A stretch of DNA of 64,000 nt from Paragordius varius (Eukaryota; Animalia; Nematomorpha): positions 12,090,001-12,154,000 of the forward strand of contig OZ176052.1 in assembly GCA_964247055.1 (NCBI GenBank). Direction: 5' to 3'. The stretch's first letter is position 1, and each line of letters opens with the position of its first letter. Shown here piece after piece: positions 2,929-49,182 of the stretch. The position numbers and the translations under genes were made by a program. The notes under the pieces were generated by a model. The model made no database searches and had not been told where the DNA came from. It worked only from the letters and a program-made list of their open reading frames with translations.

Positions 2929-4544
2929 CAGGGCTTCTTAAACTATGGATCGCGACCCCATTTGGAGTCGCGAGTGATAAGAATAGAGTTAAACAAAAAA
3001 TGTTTTTAACTTGTAAAATTTTTATAAAGGAAAATAACAATCATCGTAGATAAATATATCAAAAATTTTCTGGTTCTGAAAGACTATTTATACCAGCGTT
3101 TCTATTCCAATCATTACAATCTATATATTTATAAAAATGGAAAATGTTGGCTTTGAGATCTGCTTCCGGAAAACCGGTAAACCCATTTAAATCCAAATGT
3201 CAAAAAATATAATCATCAATGAATGCCTAGACAATAGCTTTCCCCTTTTTTGATATAGGCTCCGAGTTCGGACCCACACCCTGTGAAAAACGGTTTTTTG
3301 AAAACAGAACAATCGTCTCTTTGAGACATATATACGGAAAACGTTTTGGACCATTCGATTTCAAATATGAAAATTATTACTTTTTTTCGATTGCGCCGAA
3401 CCTAGTCGGCTTACTTTTTTAATTTAGGCCTTCTTTTTACCCGTTCCCCCCGTAAAATGCCATTTTTTAAAAAAAGTAAATTTTTCGCCCAGGATATGAG
3501 ACCGTTGAAATTCACTGAGGATTCGAGTTATTCTCTGTTAAAAGCAAAAATTATAATCTTGCGTTTTTTAATATTGGCTGCTGGGTAAACGGATAGCCGC
3601 TAAAACTGCGCCACTATAAAGAAATTGAGTTTTTTGAAGCTTATTTACAGAAAGTTCATGAAGCCATATGAGCTCATTAAAAGCTTGAAATATTACCCTT
3701 AACTAGGTAAAAATTAAGGTTTTTTTATTACCGTTAATTTGGGGCCTTTATGCCCTAAAACGCCATCACATAACAATTATTTAGTGTTGAGGTATTTTTT
3801 CGAATAACCCATGAAACGATGGTATCAAAGATGATTCCAAATATTTCCTATAAAGGCAAAGAATTTAACTCAGCGCTTTTTCAATAGAGGTCTATGGGTA
3901 GGGGTCTACCGGTTTAAAACTGAGACGCCATATAAGATAGGTGTAATTTCGGAGCTAATTTTCGAAAAACTTAAGAAGCCATACGAGTTGATTTAACACA
4001 TTTCCTGGGAATTTGTATAATATCTTCTTTTCTTCAAACAGGGGCCACAAATGATTTACTTTTTATATCCCTTGATCCCAGTTGTATAAACACAATTTCA
4101 AAATTAAAACTTTTAACCATGATTTCTTAAACCAAAAATCTTAAAATAAATCCAATGATAGTTGAATATTAACTTTAATAAGGGACGGATTAAATATGGT
4201 CAATTTTGACTACACAATATTTTAGCCTATGCAAACCCCGTAAAAGAATAATTAAAGACGTTCTTTTTATTAAATATGTTTATTATTATTTTTTATCTCA
4301 ATTAACTCTATTTTTGCAAATTATTTAGAATAACTATCGGTGAGACTATGCCACACCGAAGCGTGACAGGAGCTATTATCTTTTATAAATTCACGAATCA
4401 AAAAATGTCATAGAAATTTATAAAAAATGTAGATTTATTTTTGTCAATCTCTCAAAACCGAAATTTCTTTCATATTTGTTGGGGTCGTTGAGAAACTCGC
4501 AATCATAAATGGGGTGGGTAACTACAAAAGTTTAAGAAGCCCTG
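2929..4544. mobile_element. Non-autonomous hAT (Charlie/Buster-type) element containing a Helitron-like insert, copy 1
   Basis: 16-bp TIR CAGGGCTTCTTAAACT / AGTTTAAGAAGCCCTG. Flanks ATCTAGAG / ATCTAAGA resemble the NTCTAGAN-type 8-bp TSD. Empty sites are seen at ~15262 and ~48820. Confidence 0.9.
3120..4376 (+). mobile_element. Non-autonomous Helitron-like element inside hAT copy 1
   Basis: 5' A|TCTATATATTTATAAAAATG; 3' GC-rich hairpin (..CACCGAAGCG..) followed by CTAT|T, which is CTAG|T in the other two copies; no TSD. Confidence 0.75.
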
Positions 4545-28344: not shown

Positions 28345-29275
28345 TCAACTTGCACAGCTATGTTTTACCCCAGGTCGGTATGATATAGGCTCTCTCACCT
28401 TCCCCAGTGTAATCAAACTAAGGGATGTCCATCATCATCTATAATACCAATGTGATTACCATAATGAAGTATAAAAATGAGCTTGCTACCATAGGTCGGA
28501 GGGTGTCAGAGGCCTATGGCTACCTAAGAAAGTTGGGCTTAAACTGAAATTAAAAATCTTGAAATGCATGTTTATCCTTGCGTAATATACTGATGCTCGT
28601 GGCGTACGCACATACATGCCAGAAAGATACAAGTTTTCATAAAAGGGTGCCTACGACGCATCACTTGCTATATATACATACCTTTGAGGAGCTCACAACT
28701 GCTTACCTCCCACATCCAAAAAATTTTAATTTTTTGCATAAGCCATTCTTCTATCTGGCCTAAAGAAAATGGCACACCAACTCCGGCCTGATTCTAGGAG
28801 ACCACTGCGTAGGGATTAAAATAAAAATTGGGTCATGCACTCGAAAGAAACGGTTCTGATGTGGGAGAATTGTATTGTTTATGTAGCGCGTGGGAGTGAG
28901 CAATGACAGTTAACTCAGTCGGTGGATACTGGAAATGACTGAGCGGTAAAATCAAGAATGCACTTGTTGAAAAAAAGATCAAAATATGTAAAGACAGGAG
29001 ACGAAAGGACGCTAGACCAGTAGAAGGAGGGCTAGCCAGAAATGACATCCCCTATGCCACGAGTATCGATCTAATGCAGACGATCACATTTAGTGGCATG
29101 TCATATCAGATTTGATTATAACATTGGATAAATGATAACATTGATACCTAGTCGTAGAATAAACAACTACCTGTCGCCATTAAGAGGTATTGGTCTAAAA
29201 TTTAGCGTATAAATATAATAGGACTAATTTTATATACTATGTAGGATATCGAGCTAATAGAAAAATAAATTATGT
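28345..29275 (+). mobile_element. Degenerate LINE fragment, unit 3
   Basis: Collinear with 665-1600 and more diverged. Confidence 0.45.
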
Positions 29276-33726: not shown

Positions 33727-36534
33727 TCATTTGGCAGGGGCAAAGCCATTGTTTCTATTTTTCGGTACTGAGGTTGGTTCTGCACTACAACAATTCCAAC
33801 AATTTGTCTCGTTATTTATTTGACTTGCTGCATTCGGGGCGGGTGAACGGTGACGTGGTACTTGAGCAAATCTTGGGTTATTGATGTTTGAGGGCGGTGG
33901 TGCAAAGTTTGGCGGTAACGGCATTGGCGGTTTAAGGGGTCTTGGCGGTGGTGGCTTTTGAAGAACAGTAGATGGAGAAAAAGCGGGAACTCCAAACGGG
34001 TTATTAATGTATGCAGACGGACCTTGTGCAAAATTTGACGGTAGCGGCATTGGTGGTTTCAACGGTCTTGAAGGCGGTGGCGGATTTTGAAGACCAGTAG
34101 ATGGGGAAAAAGCGGGAGCTCTAAATCTCGGCTGAGACAACGGCGGTCTAAACATTAAACCTTGACGAGGTGGAAGGAAAGGCGGTAGTGTATTAATTGG
34201 GGTGGCGGAAGTGGGTGGTTTACTCATTAATGAACCTTGACGAGGGGGAAGTGGTGGCGGTGGGGTATGTGTTAATGTAGATGAATCTGTAAAATCACTC
34301 TCACTTTCATTCAAAACCGTTAAAAGCTTGTTCATTCCCTTCTTACAATTTTGATAGGGGGTGGAAGATGATTCACTACTAGTTGCAAAGACTTTAGATT
34401 TTTCTTCTTTTGAGGAAATGTTTTTCTCCCTTTGCTTTTTACTTCCATTCTTGGGTTTAACGGCATCAGCGGTCTTAGATGGTCTTCGTTCTTTAAAGGA
34501 AACAAAAATTATTTTTAAACGATTATTATCAACAAATGTCCCTGAATATAATTATTACTTATCATTCATATTATTTTCAAAATATAAGAGGCATATTAAA
34601 TTTCACCTTAACCACATATAACAACTACCTTAAATTAAGGAAGTTTCAAATATATATCATTCATTAAGTTGTTTCCTAAGGTGAACAATTTCTAAAAAAT
34701 GATATATTTGTATATATTATGTAACTTTTATTTTTGGGTTTTGAAGTGAGATCAGAGAGAGAATCCACATTTAGTCCTGTATGTTTTTTCAACAATCTCT
34801 TGGCGATTTGTTTTTCAATATTGCGCTCTCTACACCGTTCATAATTAAATGTCTCATATATGGATTGCAAGTTTTGCGAAACTTGTTGAGAATATTCCGC
34901 TAGCTGTTGGCAAATTTGGGCTTCTTGGCGTAAAACCTCCTCAAAATTAAGCGAAGTCAATTTATTTTTTGTATTTTGTGTGGATATAGCCGTTCCTTGT
35001 AATATACATGGGCCAGGTTTTGTCTGTTGCCAAGGCTCAAATGGACTGGGTCTGTAGATTGTCCAACTGTCATTCGGTTTATACTTAATTGGCGGTTTAT
35101 CCTCCTTTTGTCCCTCTATGTATTCTTCATCTTCATTTCTGCATTCGTACGGATATTTATTGGGTGAATTAATTGCCGATTCATTACTGCGGTCTTGCAC
35201 ATAATTATCAAGCCACATACCGAGTAATGTCTGTATAGAAAGAAAGGGGAATGTTTGTTGCAACTTACTGATTTCTGGAGTATTCGACAATAAACTTGTA
35301 TCTAAGACGTTTTGACTTCTTGTTTCTTTAAAGGCAGTATTTGAAGTAATTGGCGATTGTATCTGGTAAGTAATATTTTTAGTAGTATTAGCGTAATGTG
35401 AATATGTGCATCGTTAAAATAAAAAATTTGGGCTTATGTTAGCATATACGTTATATGATTTATAGGGTTTCGGAATCGATAACCAAATCGTTCCGGCTAA
35501 CAAATCATTTTTGCTTCTTGTTTCCTTTATTAAAGCGGTATTATAAGTATATGGATTCTCTCTAACAATTTTTAATCTTGTTAGCATTAGGGTATTTTAC
35601 GGATATTTTAATTTTTTTAAAGGTTTGCAACCCTAACCCCATAAATCATACGTTAATGTAAACATAGCCCAAGTTTCTGCAAAACTTTTATATAAATATT
35701 TTTGAATAAAAAACATTTATGACGGTTTCCGTTCTGTAATTTTAGCTGTGTAAGTTTCAACGACTCCTGGATGCGGTTTTAATATTTTATAATGCTTATA
35801 GAAACTACTGCAATTTTTAAAGGATTTTTTTTCGAAGTAAGAAATAAAATCTGCTCATTTTTTACAGCTGTTTGTAGAGTGTCTTTATTATAAATGTCAA
35901 CTGAAACTATCGAGCTTACCAATAAATATGAAAAAAATGCACCAATATTTTATTTAAAATCTAAAATAATGGATCAATAAATTAAAAATTATCATTGAAG
36001 TTAGTGAGCCAATATTGTTAGTGTGGTCTGTTTAAATCGACAAACAATACTACTACAAAATTGCTTTTAATAAAACTTTACCATCAAAAACCGACGATAG
36101 TTTTTAAGACAGAGAAAGTAGTTTTTTATATTACCCATCAATATATTATTTAATTACTCGTTTGAAATATAAGTCCCCAATTATTTTTGCAACGAAAAGG
36201 ATTTACATACCGGAGTGACGTTTGTAAATAGACCAGTTTTAGAATCTAAATAGTTCAAGATGTGAGCTTTGGTGTCTGGAATCGTTTTAGGTGATCCATT
36301 CTTAATTGTATTACTTGTATCTTGATAGTTGTTGGTTGGAGATGAATTGGTGAGGGTGGAGAGGGGTGGATGAAATGTACTCATTGTATTTGGCTGAAAA
36401 GGGGATGAAACATTTTCTGGGGATAAATTGAAAGTTTGGAAATTTGAATTTTTTTCATCCAACATAAATGGTGTTAAGCATGTACTACATTGATCATAGG
36501 GTTTTTGACAAGTTTCACAAATTTTAAAACTCAT
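33727..36534 (-). CDS. Orphan multi-exon proline-rich gene, copy 3 (mosaic of copies 1 and 2)
   Basis: ORFs 36181-36534, 34676-35290 and 33727-34335. Confidence 0.65.
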
Positions 36535-37119: not shown

Positions 37120-37810
37120 TCAACTTGCACAGCTATGTGATACCAGATCGGTATGGTCTAAGCTCTCTCACATGCCCCAGTGTAATCAAACTAAGGGATG
37201 TCCATCATCATCTATATCAATATGATTACCATTATGAAATATAAAAATAAGCTTGCTGCCAATTAGTCGGTGGGTGTTAGAGATATATGGCAATCCAAGA
37301 AAGTCGGGCTTAAACTGAAATTAAAAATCTTGAAATGTATGATTATCCTTGCGTAATATACTGATGCTCGTGGCGTAACACGCACATACATGCCAGAAAG
37401 ATACAAGTTTTCATAAAAGGGTGCCTACGACGCATCAGTTGCTATATACACATACCTTTGAGGAGCTCACAACTGCTTACCTCCCACATCCAAAAAATTT
37501 TAATCCTTTGCATAACACTAACCATTCTTCTAGCTGGCCTGAAAATAGCGGCACACCAACTCCGGCCTAATTCTAGGACCCACTGCGTGAGGCCTAAAAT
37601 GAAATTTGGTAATGCACCCTGGAACGCTTACGATGTGGGAGAATCGTATTGTTCATGTAGCGCATGGGAGTAAGCAATGACAGTTAATTCAGTCGGTGGA
37701 TACTGGAAATGATAGAGCGGTAAAATCAAGAATGTCCTTGTTGAAAAAAAGATAAAGGACGCTAGACCAGAAGAAGGAGGACTAGCCAGGAATGACATCC
37801 CCTATACCAC
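37120..37810 (+). mobile_element. Degenerate LINE fragment, unit 4, 5' part (resumes at 47279 and runs to ~47505)
   Basis: Other units read CCCCTATACCACGAATATCG. Here this is split as ...TATACCAC | insertion | ACCACGAATATCG. Confidence 0.5.
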
Positions 37811-37824
37811 TGTTAAAAGGGTTA

Positions 37825-37972
37825 GAATAATGGAATAGGACCTTGGTTCTATTTTGTGGTTTTCGGAATCCGAGGTAATGATTAAGAGGAACGGACGGGG
37901 GCATCCGTACTGTGGCGCTAGAGGTGAAATTCTTGGACCGCCGCAAGACGAACAACTGCGAAAGTATTTGCC
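37825..37972 (+). pseudogene. 18S rRNA fragment B (central region, roughly nt 810-960)
   Basis: GAATAATGGAATAGGACC...GGGGGCATCCGTACT...AGAGGTGAAATTCTTGGAC...GCGAAAGTATTTGCC are conserved eukaryotic SSU motifs. Confidence 0.93.
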
Positions 37973-38887
37973 TATTAACAGTGGTATTCGTATTTGGGTT
38001 GCTAAGAAGAGGACTACGTAATTGATAATTTGCGTGAGGATTGTATGTTTGAGGTGTCGGAATACTACTCGTAGTCCCATACATTTTACTGGCTTTTTTA
38101 GCCATGGTCGCCAACAATTCTTGGCTATGTTTGTACGTGACACACAATGTATTTATCCACTCTTTGAGGCCAACATCATCTTGCTGAGTTAATATCATCT
38201 TTTCCTTATTTTCATGCTTATAATTTGCACTGTTCACCCTTGATCATCATGAATTCAGTATCAACCGATGCGATTTGGTCCATAAATACCAGTTCAGGTT
38301 TTCCCGACTCCGGGTATAATTCAAGTCGATTCGGGTATAATTTAGCATACCGAGTTTGCCAGGCTGAGGCGAAGGGACCCCCAAGTTTTTTAAGGTAGCC
38401 ATGTATGATACAATCAGATTCCTTTTCATCAGCGTCAAATTTGGTTTTTTGTTTGTTTCGTTTTTTTGCCTCTAATTTATCCGTTTCTTGGTTAACTACA
38501 TCAAACACCGTTTCTGCAATCTCTTCTTGCCATCGTTCTGATATGACTATGGGAAAATTCTTATAAATCTCCTGATCGAATTCCGTTAATTTAATTTCTT
38601 TGGTGTCTTCTTCATCGAATGAGCCAATATCAAAAGCGTCGGCTGCATTGACCTCCCCGCTAGGGGGTATGAGAGGTGGCGGATATCTCCGCATGTAAAC
38701 CATGGTCCAATCGACACCCACAAAAAATAGATGTTCTTTCACTTCTATTGTCCCATATCCGCAACAACCCAATCTAAGTTCTACATCGCGAGCCAAAAGT
38801 CCTTCGAGCACAGACTTAACTTCGGGCGTAAAAGTGTTTGGTAATTCAACATCCATTGTTAATGTCATTCTATCGATTTCGTGTTTA
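37973..38887 (-). pseudogene. GRK2: Intronless GRK2/Gprk1 (beta-adrenergic receptor kinase family) fragment: end of the kinase domain, AGC C-tail and PH domain
   Basis: [84 protein letters not shown] and DDVGLKEW..MAKKASKMYG. One frameshift near 38225; no start or stop; no introns. Confidence 0.93.
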
Positions 38888-39699
38888 GTTGATCCTGCCA
38901 GTAGTCATATGCTTGTCTCAAAGATTAAGCCATGTATGTCTAAGTATAAACTTACTCAAAGTGAAACCGCGAATGGCTCATTAAATCAGTTATGGTTTAT
39001 TAGATTGTCAATGTTACATGGATAACCGTGGTAATTCTAGAGCTAATACATGCTAAAACATCGAATCGTTTGGTTCGATAGCTTATATTAGAACAAAAAC
39101 TAACCGTTTTTGGTGATTCTGGATAACTTTTTGCCGATCGCATGGTCTTTTACCGGCGACGTATCTTTCAAATCTGCCTTATCAACTGTCGATGGTAGGT
39201 TATATGCCTACCATGGTCGTAACGGGTAACGGAGAATCAGGGTTCAATTCCGGAGAGGGAGCCTGAGAAACGGCTACCACATCCAAGGAAGGCAGCAGGC
39301 GCGCAAATTACCCAAGTTCGGAGAGGTAGTGACGATAAATAACAATGCAGGTCTCTTACGAGAACCTGTAATTGGAATGAGATCACTTTAAATCCTTTAA
39401 CGAGGATCTATTGGAGGGCAAGTCTAGTGCCAGCAGCCGCGGTAATTCCAGCTCCAAAAGCGTATATTAAAGTTGTTGCAGTTAAAAAGCTCGTAGTTGG
39501 ATCTCGGGTAACGGGAGGAAGCCCGCTTAGCTGCGATCGTTTCCTTGTCCGACCTACAATCCGTCTTGTCTTAGGTGCTCTTCACCGGGTGTCTTTGGTT
39601 AAACGGAACGTTTACTTTGAAAAAATTAGAGTGCTCAAAGCAGGCTCGATGCCTCGAATATCTGTGCATGGAATAATGGAATAGGACCTCGGTTCTATT
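38888..39699 (+). pseudogene. 18S rRNA fragment A (from about nt 7 of mature 18S to the AATAG/CTATT hairpin)
   Basis: GTTGATCCTGCCAGTAGTCATATGCTTGTCTCAAAGATTAAGCC; GCCAGCAGCCGCGGTAATTCCAGCTCC. Several normally invariant positions are mutated (GCCATGTATG, GGTTCAATTCC, AAGTCTAGTGCC). Confidence 0.95.
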
Positions 39700-39722
39700 C
39701 CATTATTCCATGCACAGATATT

Positions 39723-42700
39723 AAATTATAAAAACTGGTGCCGTCTAGGCAAACCAGCACTAGATTTTCATAACAATAATATTTTCATACATGCATACAA
39801 TAATAATCGTATAAAAACATTAGGTAAATGCAAACTACAGGTTGAATTAGATAAAAGAACGCACATTCTAGAGTGCTTTATTATAAACAACAATTTACCA
39901 TCAATATTTGGAATGGACTGGATAAAACAATTGAATTTGAAATTACCCAGTCATGTTATAATAAATAACTTATCTTCATATGATATATATAACAAATTTA
40001 ACAAGTTATTTTCTGAGGGCCTTGGTTGCTGGAAAGGCGAACCGATTAAAGTGCTTTTAAGTAATAATAATTGTGGTAGAATTTTTCCAAAAGGGTGCCA
40101 CTATCATTACAAAGCAAAGTGGATGATGAGATAAATAGATCGGTAAAACTGGATATAATTGAGCCTGTTGATCCAAAAAAGAAATCGTTTGGTCCAGCCC
40201 TACGGTAAATATTTTAAAACCGAATAAAGAGCTTAGAATATGCGCGGATTTTAAAATATAAATCCACACATAAAACCGCCGCAATACATAATCCTTTGAC
40301 GACCTCATCTCAAAAATTTTCCTTCGGCAAATCTTTCTCAACACTAGATTCGAAAGACGCCTATTTTCAAATTCCAGTAGACCCAGATAGTCAGCACTTA
40401 CTAACAATTTCTACACACAAGGGGTTTTATAAGTATAATTGCCTTTTGGGTTGATTCAACAAATAATGGACGAGTTATTAAAAGATTGCACAGGTACCGC
40501 CGTTTATTTAGATGACGTTATAGTGACAAACAGGCGAAACCGAGACAAAGCACAAGGACAACCTAATAAAGGTATTTACCAAATCGGAGACAATGGGATT
40601 AAAATTGCGCAAAGATAAAATAAATTTTTTTCAACCATCTGTGGAATTCTTGATCATATTATTTCTGAAAATCGCATTAAACCCTCCCCAAATAAAATTA
40701 AAGCCATCCAAAAGTCCCGACCCCGACCAACAAAACCACTCTTAAATCATTTTTGGGTTTACTTTTTCATGCAAAATTCATCCCTTCCCTAAGCATTTTA
40801 ATGGGAGAACTACATAAATTAGCAGGTAACAAACAAAAGTGGTGTTGGACGCTAACGCATGATTCGATATTCAAAAAAGCTAATGACTTGATCTGCCAGA
40901 GTTTTTCCTTGCATCCGTATAATCCCAAACTACCTATAGTCTTGGAAATCGACGCGTCAATGTCAGGATACAGTGCTATTTTATCACATAGAACAACAGC
41001 GGGCAATCGCCCGATCGCCTACACGTCAAAAAAATGCTCTCAAGCTGAAGAAAACTATTCAGTAATTGAACGAGAAGCAAAAGCTATCCTAATAGCGTTA
41101 GAGAAGTTTAAAACCTTTTTGTATGGCAGAAAATTTATAATACAAACGGACCACAAACCTCTAATGAAACTATTTGGGCCTCAAAGAGATCTAAGTAAAA
41201 TTAATAATTGTAAACTAGTACGCTAAATAACTAGAACATTGGTATTCGATTTTAACATAGAATATCACCCTGGTACAGAAAACATAGCTGACTGCCTATC
41301 GAGACTTCCCATTGAAAACCAGGAGGCGATGGCTATTGTGAAAGACGATGAAAGTAGCAATGTTCATTTGATTTGGTCCACGAATTAAATTTAAATAGAG
41401 ATATTATCTATCAAGAGTCGATAAAGGATCCTACGATAGCAAAATTAAAAGTAGCCCTAAGGTCTAATAATTGGACGGACCCTTTGGTCAAGCCTTTCAT
41501 CGCAATGAAAAATGAAATTGAGGATGCATACCGTTTATTATTTGTGGGGGATCGGGTAATAATCCCGAACAAAATTAAGCCAGAGATTTTAAGATACCTG
41601 CATAGTGGCCATCCGGGAATACAAGCCATGAAACTAATAAGCCGTGAAAAGGTTTATTGGCCCGGTTTGAGCCAAGATATCGAAAAATGGGTGTGTAGTT
41701 GCCAAAACTGCCAAAGGCTGCCCCCAAATGTATCCGAAAATCCCACTATCAATGGAACGGGAATACAACCATATGGGAACGGCTCCACCTAGATATCGAT
41801 GGACCCATTGACAATTTATACAGGGTGGTACTAATTGATCATTGGACCCGCTGGGTGGAGGTAAAGACGTTACGCTGTGTGAATACAGGTAATATTCTAA
41901 AGTTTTTAGAAACCTGTATTTGCCGGTATGGGTACCCAAAAGTGGTGGTTACTGATAACGGCTCTTATTTTAAATCGGGGGAGTTTGAGAGAACTTTAGC
42001 TTCCTCTAATATAAAACACGTAACATCAGCTCCCTACCACTCCCGAACAAATGGGTTGGTAGAGAGGGTAATTTACACTCTAAAAAATCATTATTCAATG
42101 TCAACCCCACTTTCCTCAGACCCAGTGCGAAGATTAAACCAAATCTTATGGGCTTACCGAAACACGCGACACAGTTCCACGAAGGAGACCCCCGCGCATT
42201 TGTTTTTAAAAAGAACTATGCAAAGCCCATTTACATGGATGAAAACGAAACCCAACGAATTCATGGATACTCCTGACATTCCATAGGAGTTTGAAAAGGG
42301 GCAAAAGGTATATATCAAGAATGAATTGTGTACTGGCTGGAAGGAGGGACAAATCGTCGACAGAACGGGATGGTCGTACAATGTCAACGACAATGGCAAA
42401 ATTATCCGCAAACATGCTGATCAATTAAAGAATCGCATGGATTGGTCGGCCGAAGGAGAAGACAGGAGAAGTGAGGAAAAGACTAAAAATCTAGATAACC
42501 CGGAAATATCAGGCAGCATTCCTAACTCATCATCCGCAAACTTAAACAACAATGATAATAACCTCCGAAAACATCCCACGGAACATGAAATAAGAACCCC
42601 TGAAAACATCGAGGAGAATCCGGAATCAGAAAGTGCGCCTTCAAGTGAGAATACTCCCGTGCAAACAAGTGACACTTCTCCTACTACGACTCGCCGGTAT

Positions 42701-42750
42701 CCGATTCGATCCCGAAAGCCACCCGACCGATATCAAGCTTATGGAAGAAG
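39723..42750 (+). pseudogene. Degenerate Gypsy pol of element 1 (C-terminal half of protease, RT, RNase H, integrase)
   Basis: WCRLGKPAL..IFGMDWI (protease); LDSKDAYFQI and AVYLDDVIV (RT); LEIDAS..TDHKPL (RNase H); HSGHPG..CQNCQ, LHLDIDGP, VTDNG and NGLVERV (integrase). Many frameshifts. Confidence 0.93.
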
Positions 42751-42753
42751 GTA

Positions 42754-43002
42754 TGTTAAAAGGGTTATTATCATACGCAAATTATCCTTCTCTTTTTAGT
42801 GCAAAATACACTTTTGTCCTTGTTACGTTAAAAATATATATTACCTTGGTTGTGAATGCAAATTATTTTATTTATGCTTATTATCTTTAACAACGTTTAA
42901 ATCAGACAACTTTATCCTTGTGAATGCAATAACCAAATTTCAGAATATATATAAGGAATCATTGTGACACGCAGATCATAATATATTATTCAGTTTTGTT
43001 GT
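42754..43002 (+). repeat. 3' LTR of element 1, first part (remainder 47235-47278; ~293 bp in total)
   Basis: Follows the polypurine tract GGAAGAAGGTA (42743-42753), starts TGTTAAAAGGGTTA, and is split by element 2. Confidence 0.85.
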
Positions 43003-43274
43003 TGTAGTAAATCAAGAAACCGTAAAACAATAAGATTTATTGAGATAAAATGCAAAAACTAAACTACATACAGTTTGCGATGTATATATACTTTTTGTGA
43101 ATACAATATTTACATGTTAAGCCAAGGTAAAATAACTTGTGCAGGTTAAATACAAAATTGATACAATCGTTTAACTCATATATAAAAGGTCATCAAAATG
43201 TATTCAAATCTAATATATAATTTGGTCTTGTCTAAGGTTAACTAACTTGATGTATTCTAATCTATCATATCTCC

Positions 43275-46200
43275 TTATCCAAATCCGAGCCGATCTGGTG
43301 CTTTTCTTTCCCTAAGAGGATATCTCCTTTCAGGTTCTTTCTCAGTTGTTTTTTCCGTTCTTATTTCAACCTGGGTGTCTTTCTCGTTTTCTTTTTCTTT
43401 GCTTGGTTCCTCCCCCACCTCCCGATTATTGGTTGTCATCTCTTCATCTGTTTGGTTTATCGTTACATTATCCTCCTCCTCAACGCCGTTCTCGACTCCG
43501 GTCGGCCGTAATTGATCCGCATGCTTGCGAAGTGTTCGATTTCCATTTTTAACCGTGTACGAGAGTACCCCTGTTCTCTCCAAAATTATACCTTTTCTCC
43601 ACCCTGAATTGATTTCATTCTTTATGTACACTTCTTCGTCCAGTCTAAAAGTTTGATTAGGAATTAGGTCGTCCTCTAATTGTTGTGCGGGTGTTTCCCT
43701 AACCCAAGAGAAGGGGGTATTAATTTGTCTTTTCAGAAATAAATTATACGGGCACTCTTTTGTGGCGCTATGTACGGCGGAGCGATAACCCCATAATACT
43801 TGGTTTATTTTTTTGTCAGGAGTCAGCTTAGAATCCGTTAACGATTTATAGTGTGCTTTTAAGGTGTAAATGACTCGTTCCACCAGCCCATTTGTTCGTG
43901 GATGATAGGGGGCGCTAGTGACGTGTTTGATGTTTGCTCGTTGCAAGGTCTCATTAAAATCTTTCGATGCAAAATATGTTGCATTATCGGTAACGATCAT
44001 TCGGGGAAACCCGTACCTTACACACCAAATTTCCAACCAATGTAGTATGTTTGCCGAATTAACAGTTCTTAGCAATTCGACTTCAACCCATCTGGAGCTA
44101 CTATCGATAGCTACTAACCAATACAACCCATCTATAGGACCAGCAATATCAAGATGTATCCTTTCCCAGATACCCGTATTAAAATTCCATTTGTACGTTG
44201 GATTACTTTTTATGTTACTCCGGTTTAACTGACACCCCATACAAGATCTCACATAATTTTCAATATCTTGGTTTATACCTGGCCAATAAACCCTAGCCTT
44301 GGCAGACTCTTTCATTACATTAGCCCCCGAATGTCCAACATGCAAAAATTTTAACGTTTCATTTCGCAACGCCCTGGGTATAAACAGACGATCGCCCCAA
44401 TACAACAAACCATATGATTCTTGTATTTCGTTTCTTATACTCAATACCGAATTTAGAATTGGAGCTGACCAATCATTATGATGTAGAGCCGATTTTAATG
44501 CCATCAAAAACTCATCCCGTAAAGTATTTTCTTTCATTCGCTGTACGCTTAAGTTGTCAGTTGTTAGAAAGTTGATTTGCCTGGGTTGCTCCTCCACTTC
44601 CTCAGTCGGTTCTTCATACGGTAGACGAGATAACCAATCCGCTAAATTTTCCGAACCATTAATATATTGTATAGTAAAATTATAATCGGCTGTTCTGAGT
44701 ATCCATCTTACTAATCTACTATTGTTAATATTACTTAGATCTCTCTTAAAACCAAACAACTTGATCAGGGGTTTATGATCGGTTAATTATACAAACTTTC
44801 TGCCATACACAAACATTTTAAATTTTTCTAGCGCATATAAAATTGCCCTTGCTTCTTTTTCAATTACAGAGAAATGTCGTTCTGCCTTCGCACATTTTCG
44901 AGACGCAAAAGCTATCGGCCGTTTTCCCTCACTTGTCATATGTGATAAAACTGCTCCGAATCCGTCATTCGATGCATCTGTTTCCAACACTAACGGAAGG
45001 TTCGGGTTAAACGGTATTAGACATAAGGCATTACTCACCAACAGTTTAGCTTTATCAAAAACCATCTCTTCTTTTGTCGACCAACACCATTTCTTAGAAC
45101 CTGTAAGCGCATGTAAGTCCGCGATTGTAGCAGGCAAAGATGGAATAAAACGCGCGTGAAAATTTAACATTCCCAAAAAAGACCGAAGTGATGTTTTATT
45201 GGTAGGTGTAGGACAATTCAAAATTGCTTTTACTTTTTCGTTATCTGGTTTAATTCCTTTGTCTGAAATTATATATCCTAAGTATGACACTGAGGAACGA
45301 GCTAATTGGATTTTATCCTTTTTTAATTTCAAACCCACAGCAGCTAATTTGTTCAACACTTTTTTTAAATTATCCTTATGCTCCATTACCGTTGTTCCAC
45401 TAACAATTACATCATCTAAGTAAACCGCTGTACCTGGACAATCTTTTAATAACTCATCCATAATTTGTTGAAATATCGTGGGTGCACTAGATATTCCAAA
45501 TGGCAGTCTCTTAAATCGAAAAAGGCCTATATGTGAACTAAACGTTGATCAAACGTTGGAATCAGATGATCTACAGGAACCAGACTTGGGTTTAAAGTAA
45601 CTCTAAAATCACCACATATACGAATATCGTTATCATTCTTTTTAACTATCACCAATGGAGTTACCCAGTCAATTCGTGTTTGCGAGGGGTTTATGGACTC
45701 TATAATCCCCAGACTTTCCAGCCTCTTTAATTCACTCTCCACCTTAGACTGAAGCGGAATAGGTACCCTTCTGGTCGCAAATCTTTTGGGGATACTCCCT
45801 TTTTTGAGAAACAACTTAATGGGTGGTCCCGTGTAACACCCCATACCCTCACAAAACAAATCCTTAAATTTATTCAATTCCACGTAATTAACATTTTTTA
45901 CACATACCGGCTCTGGAAATCTGCATTCAAAACTTTTCATCCATGGTAGCCCAAAAATGTTACCCCAATCATCCCTCGTAACCATACATTCCAACTGTTT
46001 GACCATACCATTCCATTTCACATCTACCATACATTGTCCCATCACCTCTACACCTTGCTGGTTGAACCCAACTATTGGACCCGCGGGAGCTAAGGTCGGC
46101 CTCCCAATCTCCATCCACGCTCTTCCCAATCAATAATATTTGAGCTCCGGTATCGTACAACATCCTCACCCAATGGCCATTCAGACTTGCTTGCGTTCGG

Positions 46201-46922
46201 GCTTCATTATTATTATTGTTACCATGAAGTCTATTAACGCGCCGGCAACACCTGCCAAAATGACCACGTCCTTTGCATCGATAACACTCCTTGTTTGAAG
46301 CGGGACACCAGTTGATCGCATGCACGTATCCACATTTTCCACATTTTTTTCTTATCATCATAACTTGCCTATTGTCGGGACCCTGATCAATCAAACAGCT
46401 GTCCGCCTTTTCGTATGCCATTGCCATTTCTACCACCATCTCCAACGTAACCGGTTTCCCATCAACCATTGCATCTGGAAATTTTGTGAACAGATCTATT
46501 TCCAATCTTTTGAGTTGTAACCCTCCAACAAACCCATCTCTGATTCTTAGCATTGCATCTTGCTCAAAGTTGCACCGGGCAGCACATTCCTTTACTCGAA
46601 TCAAAAAATCCATCACTGATTCCGTGGCTTCCCTTCGGAGTTGCGTAAACTGAAACCTGGCTGCAAACGCATTGTATGTCGGAGCAAATATTTTTTTTCC
46701 AGCTGCTACCAAAGCATCCCAGCCCACTTCCTCTAACAGTACAGGATAAAAGAATTTCTTCAACTTTGGAATATGGGATAGACCAATGTTGGCCAATAGT
46801 AAGTTTTTTTTTGTTTCATCATCTTCTGGAATTAATTTCACTTTTAACATTCTCTTTATATAATCTATGTAATCCTCGAAACTCGTTGCTGGATCATAGG
46901 GTTCTAAACTTAATTTCTCCAT
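43275..46922 (-). pseudogene. gag-pol of element 2, disrupted
   Basis: Gag with CCHC-like knuckles (CGKCGYVH..C, CYRCKGRGHFGRCC); protease LYDTGA; RT YLDDV; RNase H LETDAS; integrase HHCC and DDE. Lesions: frameshift at ~46130, RT deletion at ~45540, and in-frame TAA at 44787-44789. Confidence 0.93.
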
Positions 46923-46949
46923 GCGCGAATGTAATGAGGTAAAAAAAAA

Positions 46950-46962
46950 TTCGACCGCGCCA
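46950..46962 (-). promoter_or_regulatory. Primer-binding site of element 2 (TGGCGCGGTCGAA; tRNA-Ser-like by resemblance)
   Basis: Lies 2 nt inside the 5' LTR and starts with TGG, complementary to tRNA CCA. The tRNA assignment is an inference. Confidence 0.75.
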
Positions 46963-47697
46963 AATGTAGTAAATCAAGAAACCGTAAAACAATAAGATTT
47001 ATTGAGATAAAATGCAAAAACTAAACTACATACAGTTTGCGATGTATATATACTTTTTGTGAATACAATATTTACATGTTAAGCCAAGGTAAAATAACTT
47101 GTGCAGGTTAAATACAAAATTGATACAATCGTTTAACTCATATATAAAAGGTCATCAAAATGTATTCAAATCTAATATATAATTTGGTCTTGTCTAAGGT
47201 TAACTAACTTGATGTATTCTAATCTATCAGTTGTTATACTAAATAAATATATATATATATATATCCTTTTTTATATCAACCACGAATATCGATCTAATGC
47301 AGACGACCACAACTAGTGCATGTCATATCAGATTTGACTATAACATTGGATAAATGATACATTGATACACTAATCGTAGAATAAACAACTACTTGTCGCC
47401 ATTAAGAGGTAATGGTATAGAATTTAGGGTATAAAATATATAGGACTAACTCTATATACTTAATGTGCTGTAGGATATCAAGTTAGAATATAAAAATAAA
47501 TAATGTAACCCAATAATTTACTCTTTCCCACAAAATTGCAATAACAATTCATGCATACCTTATATTTTTAACGTATCATTATATCCCTCAAGGTACACCC
47601 AACGAGACGATAAAATGAAAAATGAAGGTTTAAAAAATATTAAGTTTTTATAAAAAATATAGACATTCGTGCAATATCTTTATTATTTTAACTACTG

Positions 47698-48794
47698 CAC
47701 CAGATGTATATAATACAAGTTTAACTAATATAAGAAGACAAAAAAGTACTCAACCGATTAATTTGACGATGCCATTTGACCCATCACACATCAGACGACA
47801 CAGACAAAGAAAATGAGTCTGTCAAAAGCGAGCTCTCATGTTCATTATTCAGTAATTAAGTCGAACTGTGTGCCTAAAAAACGATTGCGGGATGCATTGC
47901 TTTTATACGTCAGAAGAAAAAGGATGTTAAAAGTCATTGTTCCATCGATTAAATTGTGTAACATAGTTTAAATATTTAAATGATTTTTATATGAAAGAGA
48001 GTGGGTACCATGGCAGACCACACAGCCACGAAGACGAAGTGCAAGACTAATTGGATAATGGCTCAACTCAAACTCATTTCATAAGTGTATCACAACCATT
48101 CGATGTTTACAAAATGAGAAGAATCAATAAACTCAGTAAATACTGACCAGACAATTCGCATGGCAATTATAAAATCACCAATGGACTTGAGATATCCTGC
48201 TTTCGGAAGATGGTGAGAAATAGTTTTTGTAAATTGAGAAAGAGAAATGCTAAGTTGCCAACCGGTCAATCAACATCAAAGTTAATCACTTCAGTAAAAC
48301 CATGAATGTGTCTGGTGGACCAAAGCGCTGTTGTGCATTATGAGCCCCGAAACCGTTAATACAAAACTCTATCTGCAGAAAATGATTAATTAAATTAATG
48401 CATTAAACGACCAAAAATAGGCCAGAAGACAGGACGATAAATTTCGCCACATAACAAGGCTTCGTCTTACATGGCAAAACCAGTATATACACCTTATAAT
48501 CGCTTTGAGAAAATTCTTTTGCATTTGGAAAACTCTCCTGACCTGGATATCATTATTCCCTCCTCGCATCAACATGGTATATGCTTGCAGAAAGCAGATT
48601 AACAATTTGGAAAACGTTGGAAAATGGCTTGACAGATGGTTTACCACAAAAACATTCAGTTTTTTAGCATTGCATTCATAACTTGAGAGCTAAGGAAATT
48701 TTTGGTGGACAATATCTCGAATGAAATAAATTTGATTTCCCTGTATAATTATTACTTTTTTTAGCAACCGTAATTATTTATGACTACACTGGTA
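47698..48794 (+). mobile_element. Mariner fossil, unit 4
   Basis: Collinear with 1784-2895. The downstream hAT site is empty (AATCTAGAGAATT). Confidence 0.85.
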
Positions 48795-49182
48795 TCAACG
48801 CTTGTACTAGGGAAAATAATCTAGAGAATTAATTTATTTGACCCTCTAAAATAATTTTATATTTACCAATTTTATTAAAGATGTCGGAGAGAGACTTCTA
48901 AGACCTATACATATTTAAAACAAACAAGTTTTACAAAAATTCCACATAATACAACATTTAATGTATGCTATTCAAATATACATAATTAGAAAAACAATAA
49001 GAAATTTATAAAAAAGATAATATACCACAGCCCAGCCCAAAAAACATTTTGAATGAATAAAAATGTTTTCCTTATCAAACCATTTTCCCAGTCAATCTAA
49101 ACGATTATCCAGTCAATGGAATTTTTTTGCAATCAACAAAAACGGTTTGGTTTTCATAAAAAATATTAAAGCAAGTTTTAAC

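Follow-up and report, generated by a model that had tools for sequence, protein, structure and literature searches.

A Ty3/Gypsy copy with fragments of 18S rRNA and kinase mRNA, probably integrated as a single template-jumping cDNA

A Ty3/Gypsy copy in the 64,000-nucleotide stretch of Paragordius varius DNA analysed here (the window) contains two pieces of 18S rRNA and a fragment of spliced GRK mRNA. The sequence suggests that the insertion is real and was made by integrase, and that it probably derives from one aberrant Ty3/Gypsy cDNA, which would have been built through end-to-end jumps between templates before its integration. In animals, LTR-mediated retroposition is a well-documented process (Tan et al. 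2016, Genome Res, PMC5131818). Host-RNA capture by LTR elements is already known; the window case is unusually messy. Most knowledge of host-sequence pickup by these elements comes from mRNA captures with microhomology joints, and the window fossil suggests that an animal Gypsy family took another route, with homology-free, end-to-end joints. Along this route broken 18S rRNA would have been used, one fragment priming on its own native helix, and the product would have been integrated despite having 14 bp of one LTR tip, a length matching the first plus-strand intermediate. The insert would then record RT hopping between RNAs in a family that is open to experiment, both on its particles and on the biochemistry of its RT.

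Positions 37811-47278 of the window form a single 9,468-bp insert with TG at 37811 and CA at 47278. Both copies of the exact ACCAC duplication noted in a preliminary description of this DNA were located, as were all the pieces in the order it gave, from the 14-bp stub to the LTR. The order from left to right is LTR stub, 18S piece B, antisense GRK, 18S piece A, snap-back, pol, PPT and 3' LTR. In the 18S numbering, the G of GTTGATCC is nt 1.

37806-37810, no strand: target-site duplication, left copy ACCAC; sister units have one ACCAC at the homologous site
37811-37824, plus strand: LTR stub, 14 bp (U3 tip, TG...), identical to 42754-42767; family copies L025 and L030 have the same LTR start
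37825-37972, plus strand: 18S piece B, sense, own 18S nt 791-939, with 2 substitutions and one 1-nt deletion relative to rDNA
37973-38887, minus strand: internal part of the spliced mRNA of a GRK2/Gprk1-type kinase, in antisense orientation relative to the element
38888-39699, plus strand: 18S piece A, own 18S nt 1-819, with 9 substitutions and deletions of 2 and 5 nt
39700-39722, plus strand: snap-back, 23 nt, reverse complement of 18S nt 777-799, forming palindrome arms
39723-42753, plus strand: decayed Gypsy pol and purine-rich PPT abutting the LTR, by homology to full-length family copies
42754-43002, plus strand: 3' LTR, first 249 bp
43003-47229, minus strand: nested Ty3/Gypsy element of a different family, with duplication GTTGT at 42998-43002 and 47230-47234
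47235-47278, plus strand: 3' LTR, last 44 bp, CA end
47279-47283, no strand: target-site duplication, right copy ACCAC, an exact match to the left copy

As had been reported, none of the three sister units has an insertion at this site. In 3/3 of these paralogous units (near 1345, 13650 and 29015) the homologous sequence is ...CCCTAT-ACCAC-GAATATCG with one copy of ACCAC, which is replaced by GCCAC in unit 3 (near 29015). A 5-bp duplication is typical of the Gypsy family (GACCG at L025, CCTGT at L037). Together with the family-typical LTR tips, it supports integration of a Ty3/Gypsy copy here as a single unit. An L1-type target-primed chimera is marked by poly(A), a 7-20 bp duplication and the absence of LTR tips. 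The window insert does not have these marks, and poly(A) is absent at both ends of every piece. The whole of 37811-47278 had been described as a Gypsy chimera. It is one insert, but 4,227 bp of it (43003-47229) are a young nested Gypsy that sits in the 3' LTR and is unrelated to the chimera. The 265-bp LTRs of the nested element are 100% identical to each other, and its gag, PR, RT, RH and IN are spread across 4 broken ORFs. Before it arrived the chimera measured ~5.24 kb; with it taken out, the 3' LTR is 293 bp.

Homology of the pol stretch to full-length family copies starts exactly at 39722/39723, eight codons past the protease DTGA motif, whose context was recognised via alignment to full copies. 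This confirms that pol begins just after the protease DTG. The stretch comprises the C-terminal part of the protease, RT, RNase H, integrase and a C-terminal tail; Pfam matches within 40218-42283 follow the order RVT_1 (weak), RT_RNaseH, Integrase_H2C2 and rve, with several frameshifts. BLAST identity of pol is 92-95% to at least 14 genomic copies, the closest being L025 (up to 97% over aligned columns). The part of the element from LTR nt 15 onward through the PBS, gag and the protease N-terminus is missing. The lost ~1.18 kb make up a quarter of the 4.55-kb element and not the 5' third originally estimated, and 1.9 kb of host sequence (two overlapping 18S pieces and the spliced GRK mRNA) stands in their place. 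The copy retains its PPT and TG...CA tips, the 5' LTR is represented by the stub only and the PBS is absent; the full relatives L025 and L030 have PBS TGGCGCGG... With neither a promoter LTR nor a PBS or gag, the window copy is a dead end.

In the 18S sequence Rfam identifies SSU_rRNA_eukarya with 628 bits. Pieces A and B overlap by 29 nt, and each has 98% identity to the homogeneous rDNA array on G000:C2. Because they differ together from this uniform array by 11 substitutions and 3 deletions (11/960 = 0.0115), they are not misassembled rDNA. The first nucleotide of piece A lies 6-7 nt inside the mature 5' end, no ETS is included, and a start at this place would fit an RNA template. The arms of the fold-back palindrome lie at 39657-39688 and 39691-39722. 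The snap-back appears to have been added once the 3' end had folded back on a native 18S helix (nt 800-808 with 811-819). The arm retains the native wobble T, so the template for nt 811-819 was 18S rather than the opposite arm.

The GRK piece spans the sequence from the KHEIDR motif, across the PH domain, into the C-terminal tail, and each end is mid-exon. It matches eight exons of a single gene of the same genome (G000:C2:13272182-13276913). Because the seven GT-AG introns are precisely gone, the piece comes from spliced mRNA. It is coding throughout, and against the spliced parent gene the window copy has two 1-nt deletions. Identity to the assembled gene is 93%, with 7/12/43 mismatches by codon position, dS of 0.28, dN of 0.029 and dN/dS of 0.10. 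Since these differences are mainly silent, the source was another functional allele or lineage. The best relatives of the piece in the database are GRK1-like proteins (74-78% identity). A protein search with the 216-aa GRK ORF, in a limited length range, gave no candidate for the source allele, with nothing above 78% identity. Other accounts of the fragment were rejected. If the 7% divergence came from neutral decay of a copy of the assembled gene, dN/dS should be 0.5 or more, against the 0.10 observed. A natural antisense transcript of GRK does not suit as template, since the introns removed are GT-AG on the sense strand, nor is 37973-38217 a 3' UTR, since the spliced parent gene shows coding throughout. 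Transduction of an older genomic mosaic is ruled out as the GRK piece is unique in the genome.

A search of the genome for relatives, proposed in the preliminary description, yielded full copies L025 and L030 and also L037, a second mRNA capture in the same family. L037 contains 782 nt of spliced Argonaute mRNA, an L1-PAZ-L2 fragment, joined after 8 nt of PBS. It has a target duplication of its own, and its junction overlaps are 0 nt in one case and, in the other, where there is a 3-nt filler, no more than 2 nt. Because L037 holds a second, independent mRNA capture, host-RNA capture appears to recur in this Gypsy family. L042 and L047 have inverted self-copies inside. L036 and L038 are truncated near the pol position of L037; upstream of the truncation are other repeats and no host genes. 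RNA shuffling in the family is recurrent and may still be ongoing, the Argonaute-PAZ capture being in a very young subfamily.

The four inter-template junctions of the window insert have overlaps of 0, 0, 0 and 1 nt and no filler, and they fit the end-to-end 'clamping' of retroviral-type RTs (PMC8363836). Template jumps onto co-packaged RNAs had been suggested. The spliced GRK piece and the fit of piece A to an RNA template agree with this suggestion, but RNA templates do not account for every piece. Because of the segment orientations, some segments were copied from DNA and not RNA. Judged by orientation, two of the pieces, the antisense GRK fragment and the snap-back of 23 nt, must have had a DNA template or been made on the opposite strand.

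A series of jumps could produce the observed order as follows. Minus-strand DNA would start normally, since the right LTR is complete, and copy the Gypsy RNA back to the protease region. A homology-free, end-to-end hop would then lead onto the 3' end of an 18S fragment (about nt 7-819) that had folded on its native helix and was already 23 nt longer. RT would run to the 5' end of the 18S RNA, hop to a GRK first-strand cDNA and hop again to a second 18S fragment (nt 791-939). The last hop would be to a 14-nt nascent plus strand, made by RT from the PPT before pausing; in HIV-1 a 12-nt plus-strand intermediate is documented at the PPT pause (PMC3185654). This 14-mer would supply the left LTR tip and prime the plus strand, and integrase would join both tips to the target. 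Such a one-step model would require 18S fragments and GRK cDNA inside the particle.

It had also been claimed that a single aberrant reverse-transcription product was integrated. Integration as one unit holds, but a one-step product is indistinguishable from later repair with cDNA filler. In the latter case a full-length Gypsy insertion with its duplication would have suffered a break or deletion, and the gap would have been patched by end-joining with free cDNAs. We regard this history as unlikely, as is its particular gap, in which LTR nt 15 through the protease N-terminus was lost and 18S and GRK cDNA fragments served as filler. Yeast and mammalian cells are known to capture cDNA at breaks. 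Blunt junctions with 0-1 nt overlap are consistent with such repair, and mixed fragment orientations with an inverted repeat at a fragment end are typical of end-joining with filler DNA. The relative ages may point the same way. The pol end branch is 0.022, a value that includes pre-insertion change too and is ~2x the 18S divergence (~21 changes expected vs 11 seen, P~0.02). Unless private mutations were already present in the source copy, the lower 18S value would fit a filler that arrived after the element did. However, the left break must by chance fall within 14 bp of the LTR tip, and the length of the resulting stub matches a defined RT intermediate. The host-RNA filler of L037 also lies at the LTR/PBS-to-pol position, which points to the particle and not to random breaks, and the end of 18S piece A coincides with the RNA 5' end, which is what run-off copying would give.

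Ligation before integration is quite improbable. Double-stranded cDNAs would have been end-joined to a truncated Gypsy cDNA and a short LTR-tip fragment, and integrase would have inserted the patchwork. An equally doubtful inventory of pieces goes with it, namely one GRK cDNA and two 18S cDNAs, of which one would have a hairpin end left by self-primed second-strand synthesis. End-joining is known to act on linear retroviral cDNA, as in 2-LTR circles, and ligation accounts for random orientations, blunt joints, the palindromic end and the 29-nt overlap of the 18S pieces, which would come from two source molecules. Four ligations would be needed, however, with both LTR tips surviving, and a 14-bp double-stranded LTR tip is improbable as a free fragment. 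The native wobble base of the snap-back fits sense-strand self-priming, for which ligation is unnecessary. An assembly or library artefact, either a chimeric read or cDNA/rDNA contamination built into the contig, is hardly credible. High-copy rDNA is prone to misjoins, and the junctions are known here from the assembly alone. Against this stand the exact target duplication and correct LTR tips at a site empty in three paralogous units. The 18S pieces are unlike every scored rDNA copy and the GRK piece is 7% off the genomic gene. GRK-piece-specific words turned up in four runs, which come from two samples of this organism, and a similar chimera structure occurs elsewhere in the genome (L037).

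Retroviral transduction resembles the proposed integration of a template-jumping Gypsy cDNA in that RT, switching templates on co-packaged RNA, puts host mRNA sequence in place of an internal part of the virus. Transducing retroviruses, unlike the window copy, are replicable with helper virus and carry inserts in sense orientation. We know of no transducing retrovirus that carries rRNA. The closely comparable retrocopies of Tan et al. 2016 (PMC5131818) are attributed to template switching in virus-like particles. There, as in the window insert, intron-less host mRNA replaces internal element sequence, several parental RNAs can be combined and the product is integrated with the element's ends. 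Those retrocopies keep both LTRs, derive from mRNAs and show microsimilarity at 86% of junctions, with a median length of 6 bp. In contrast, the left LTR of the window insert is only 14 bp, the typical microsimilarity is absent at its junctions (0-1 nt), and it has two 18S pieces, one antisense piece and a snap-back. Bs1 of maize and the chimeric cDNAs and retrosequences of yeast Ty1 likewise contain pieces of several unlinked host genes acquired via RNA (PMC13317346, PMC5131818). Bs1 propagates with both LTRs, whereas the window copy lacks a promoter LTR; with its Argonaute capture, L037 is nearer to Bs1. Abundant non-polyadenylated RNA in retroelement copies is also found in Cassandra TRIMs, which carry 5S rRNA in their LTRs as a stable, propagated module unlike the window insert (PMC7215508). 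It is found again in LINE-1 chimeras with U6, rRNA and other RNAs, which are target-primed with poly(A) and long duplications (PMC13174262); the window insert has LTR tips and a 5-bp duplication.

The captured genes differ from their assembled counterparts in the same manner, as the Argonaute fragment of L037 also departs from the assembled gene almost only at silent sites, with 20 differences at third codon positions. Because of this pattern, and because runs labelled as four other organisms contain 15-33% of the GRK piece's words, we considered whether both mRNAs came from a related other lineage or species, via Gypsy particles from a donor cell. The mRNAs would have been packaged in the donor cell and reverse-transcribed after transfer. 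If true, the chimeras would be direct records of particle-borne RNA passing between lineages, but we consider this origin very unlikely. Very divergent haplotypes within the species are a far simpler reading, and the silent-site pattern of the captured genes is an independent sign of very divergent functional alleles in the species.

The genome is that of an animal, AT-rich and 110.6 Mb in size, and the window, G000:C3:12090001–12154000, contains four diverged tandem units. The fourth holds the chimera, a Ty3/Gypsy copy with pieces of 18S rRNA and GRK mRNA (37811–47278). The units (1–37800 and 47284–49000) are paralogous, 83–89% identical near the insertion site and spaced about 8.7–15.4 kb from start to start (unit 4 also with the insert); their minus strand has proline-rich ORFs, such as the one at 33727–34335. 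No clear coding sequence was seen at the insertion site. When 37560–37810 was joined to 47284–47530, the product aligned end to end with units 1–3. At the homologous junction the other units have a single CCCTAT-ACCAC-GAATATCG (GCCAC in unit 3), and in unit 4 ACCAC flanks either side of an insert of 9,468 bp with TG at its start and CA at its end. This alignment bears out the preliminary description of one insert with TG...CA ends, an ACCAC duplication and empty sister sites; as one unit, the insert is genuine. Evidence for its junctions is confined to the assembly, the target duplication, the extent to which the pieces differ from their sources, and the word shares of sequencing runs.

Features of the chimera (18S nt 1 is the G of GTTGATCC).
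37811–37824, plus strand: LTR stub, the same as nt 1–14 of the LTR starting at 42754
37825–37972, plus strand: 18S piece B, nt 791–939 of the organism's own 18S
37973–38887, minus strand: GRK fragment, on the opposite strand to the element
38888–39699, plus strand: 18S piece A, nt 1–819 of the own 18S
39700–39722: snap-back, reverse complement of 18S nt 777–799
From 39723, plus strand: Gypsy pol, matching one family at 92–95% in at least 14 genomic copies
42754–43002 and 47235–47278, plus strand: 3' LTR of 293 bp, split by the nested Gypsy
43003–47229, minus strand: nested second Gypsy, inside the 3' LTR of the chimera

Homology to the family copies ends exactly at 39722/39723, which in full copies lies eight codons past the protease DTGA. 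Pfam domains for RT, RNase H, the integrase zinc domain and the integrase core follow in order, interrupted by frameshifts, and a purine-rich tract directly precedes the LTR. Alignments and Pfam thus reproduce the order proposed earlier, from stub, 18S B, antisense GRK, 18S A and fold-back to pol, PPT and LTR. Full-length family members measure about 4.55 kb, so the chimera has lost about 1.18 kb (the LTR from nt 15, the PBS, gag and the start of PR), and 1.9 kb of host sequence stands in its place. The insert size of 9,468 bp given in the preliminary description stands, but the nested Gypsy had been missed; without it the original chimera was about 5.24 kb. The nested element is a Ty3/Gypsy of another family, with two LTRs of 265 bp at 100% identity and a target duplication of its own, GTTGT. 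Its gag, PR, RT, RH and IN are spread over four broken ORFs despite the identical LTRs, and its PBS starts TGGCGCGG, as in the family of the chimera.

Eight exons of the sole GRK2-type gene in the assembly (G000:C2:13272182–13276913, minus strand) are represented in the GRK piece. It lacks, with exact joins, seven canonical GT-AG introns; either end lies mid-exon, and poly(A) is absent from the piece. 18S piece A begins at GTTGATCC, immediately before which the rDNA reads ATACCTG; this puts its start 6–7 nt downstream of the usual mature 5' end, without ETS, as would be expected of run-off on mature or near-mature rRNA. The missing introns and ETS agree with the suggested capture of rRNA and mRNA, and the host pieces of the chimera are evidently derived from RNA.

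Against the rDNA, which is uniform in every scored copy, the two 18S pieces together show 11 substitutions over 960 nt (1.15%; 7 are G:C to A:T) and three small deletions. The pieces are old retro-copies, and this divergence rules out misjoined rDNA as their origin. The pieces share 29 nt (nt 791–819), which requires either two template molecules or a second pass. The fold-back noted previously was confirmed in detail. In the native 18S helix nt 800–808 pair with nt 811–819, with one G-U pair; the window tracks 18S up to nt 819 and then the complement of nt 799–777. The wobble position in the fold-back arm has the native T, indicating that nt 811–819 were copied from 18S itself, after which the 3' terminus (nt 819) self-primed on its upstream sequence for 23 nt. 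In the rDNA array (G000:C2:1812522–2370316) the 18S start region is uniform across all scored copies, unit spacing is about 9–25 kb, and the units form blocks of opposing orientation, minus as far as about 2.12 Mb, plus between about 2.14 and 2.35 Mb, and minus beyond that.

A search for other copies with mRNA pieces, as had been proposed, found L037 (G000:C2:12602400–12610200), so the same Gypsy family has captured host mRNA again. In L037 the 5' LTR is followed by 8 nt of PBS, then a spliced Argonaute mRNA piece of 782 nt, pol and a 3' LTR; the target duplication is CCTGT. Pol resumes mid-RT; gag, PR and half of RT are replaced. The Argonaute piece (locus 3762–4543, minus strand) spans 10 exons in sense orientation, with an intact 260-codon frame covering ArgoL1-PAZ-ArgoL2, and its parent gene is G000:C1:12329562–12333481.

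Compared with its spliced own gene, the GRK piece has mismatches at 7 first, 12 second and 43 third codon positions (dS 0.28, dN 0.029), in-frame indels of 3 and 21 nt and two 1-nt deletions. Neutral decay from the assembled GRK gene predicts a dN/dS of at least 0.5 and was rejected, as the observed value is 0.10. The Argonaute piece differs from its parent gene by 3, 0 and 20 mismatches at first, second and third positions. Because the differences are mainly silent, both source mRNAs came from functional genes already diverged from the assembled alleles. For GRK this implies a putative second functional, highly diverged allele or lineage outside the assembly. The simplest reading of these differences is that the mRNA sources were very divergent haplotypes of the own species, though a lost paralogue or a foreign lineage may have supplied them. 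Sequencing runs of the own organism hold 51–89% of the GRK piece words. Runs X5–X8, labelled as four other organisms (B–E), hold 15–33% of its exact 31-letter words, more than the approximately 10% we estimate for 7% diverged sequence. These organisms may be closely related and have GRK genes of greater similarity, or they may carry the chimera insertion.

Donor and acceptor overlap by 0 nt at stub/18S-B, 18S-B/GRK and GRK/18S-A and by 1 nt at snap-back/pol, and filler is absent at all four junctions; the joints of L037 likewise lack homology. Relative to the element plus strand, the 18S pieces are sense and the GRK piece and 23-nt snap-back antisense. A natural antisense GRK RNA is excluded as template, since the introns removed are those of the sense mRNA. 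With a single nascent strand moving over RNA templates alone, no path would yield the observed order. With these mixed orientations, the GRK piece and the snap-back, at a minimum, must have had DNA as template or have arisen as the opposite strand. Of the multiple template jumps proposed at the outset, the RNA origin of the pieces holds, but jumps among RNAs alone fail on the polarity of these two pieces.

We suggest that the minus strand began normally, departed from the Gypsy RNA in the protease region and then passed end to end across short nucleic acids within the particle. Successive templates would be a self-extended 18S fragment (to its 5' end), GRK first-strand cDNA, 18S nt 791–939 and a 14-nt plus-strand DNA. 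Once copied, the last would give the left integrase site and could prime the plus strand. On the PPT primer HIV-1 RT adds 12 nt, pauses and cleaves the primer away (PMC3185654), so a 12–14-nt plus strand with an exact U3 tip is a defined intermediate. Retroviral-type and LTR-retrotransposon RTs perform end-to-end "clamping" on a few base pairs from non-templated addition (PMC8363836), which produces seamless joints without donor-acceptor homology.

LTR-mediated retroposition that yields multi-gene chimeras is known from flies, mosquitoes, fish, birds and mammals (PMC5131818), and also from plants and yeast (PMC13317346, PMC5408686). The window chimera shares this principle. However, it lacks two published hallmarks, the presence of both LTRs and microsimilarity at the joints, and it adds 18S rRNA, a self-priming hairpin of rRNA and a piece of antisense cDNA.

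The window chimera has an end branch of 0.022 in a tree built from 20 family copies. The family loci L025–L051 form two subfamilies, with end branches of 0.009–0.023 versus 0.0006–0.0055. L037 (0.0055) and its subfamily (0.0006–0.005) are very young, and the short branches suggest very recent activity. At 0.0115, divergence of the 18S pieces comes to about half of the pol branch (11 changes seen versus about 21 expected, P ~0.02). Such a gap mildly favours a two-step origin, in which a normal Gypsy insertion was broken later and patched with cDNA filler younger than the element. However, private changes already present in the transcribed source copy explain it equally well.

Two members, L042 (G000:C5:10063000–10069500) and L047 (G000:C1:9458600–9463000), have an inverted self-copy of gag/PR/RT as their 5' part, with breakpoints near element position 1664–1671; they are fold-back or twin-priming-like structures. 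L039 and L040 have a common internal deletion breakpoint at element position 2098, and L050 has an inverted 3' LTR.
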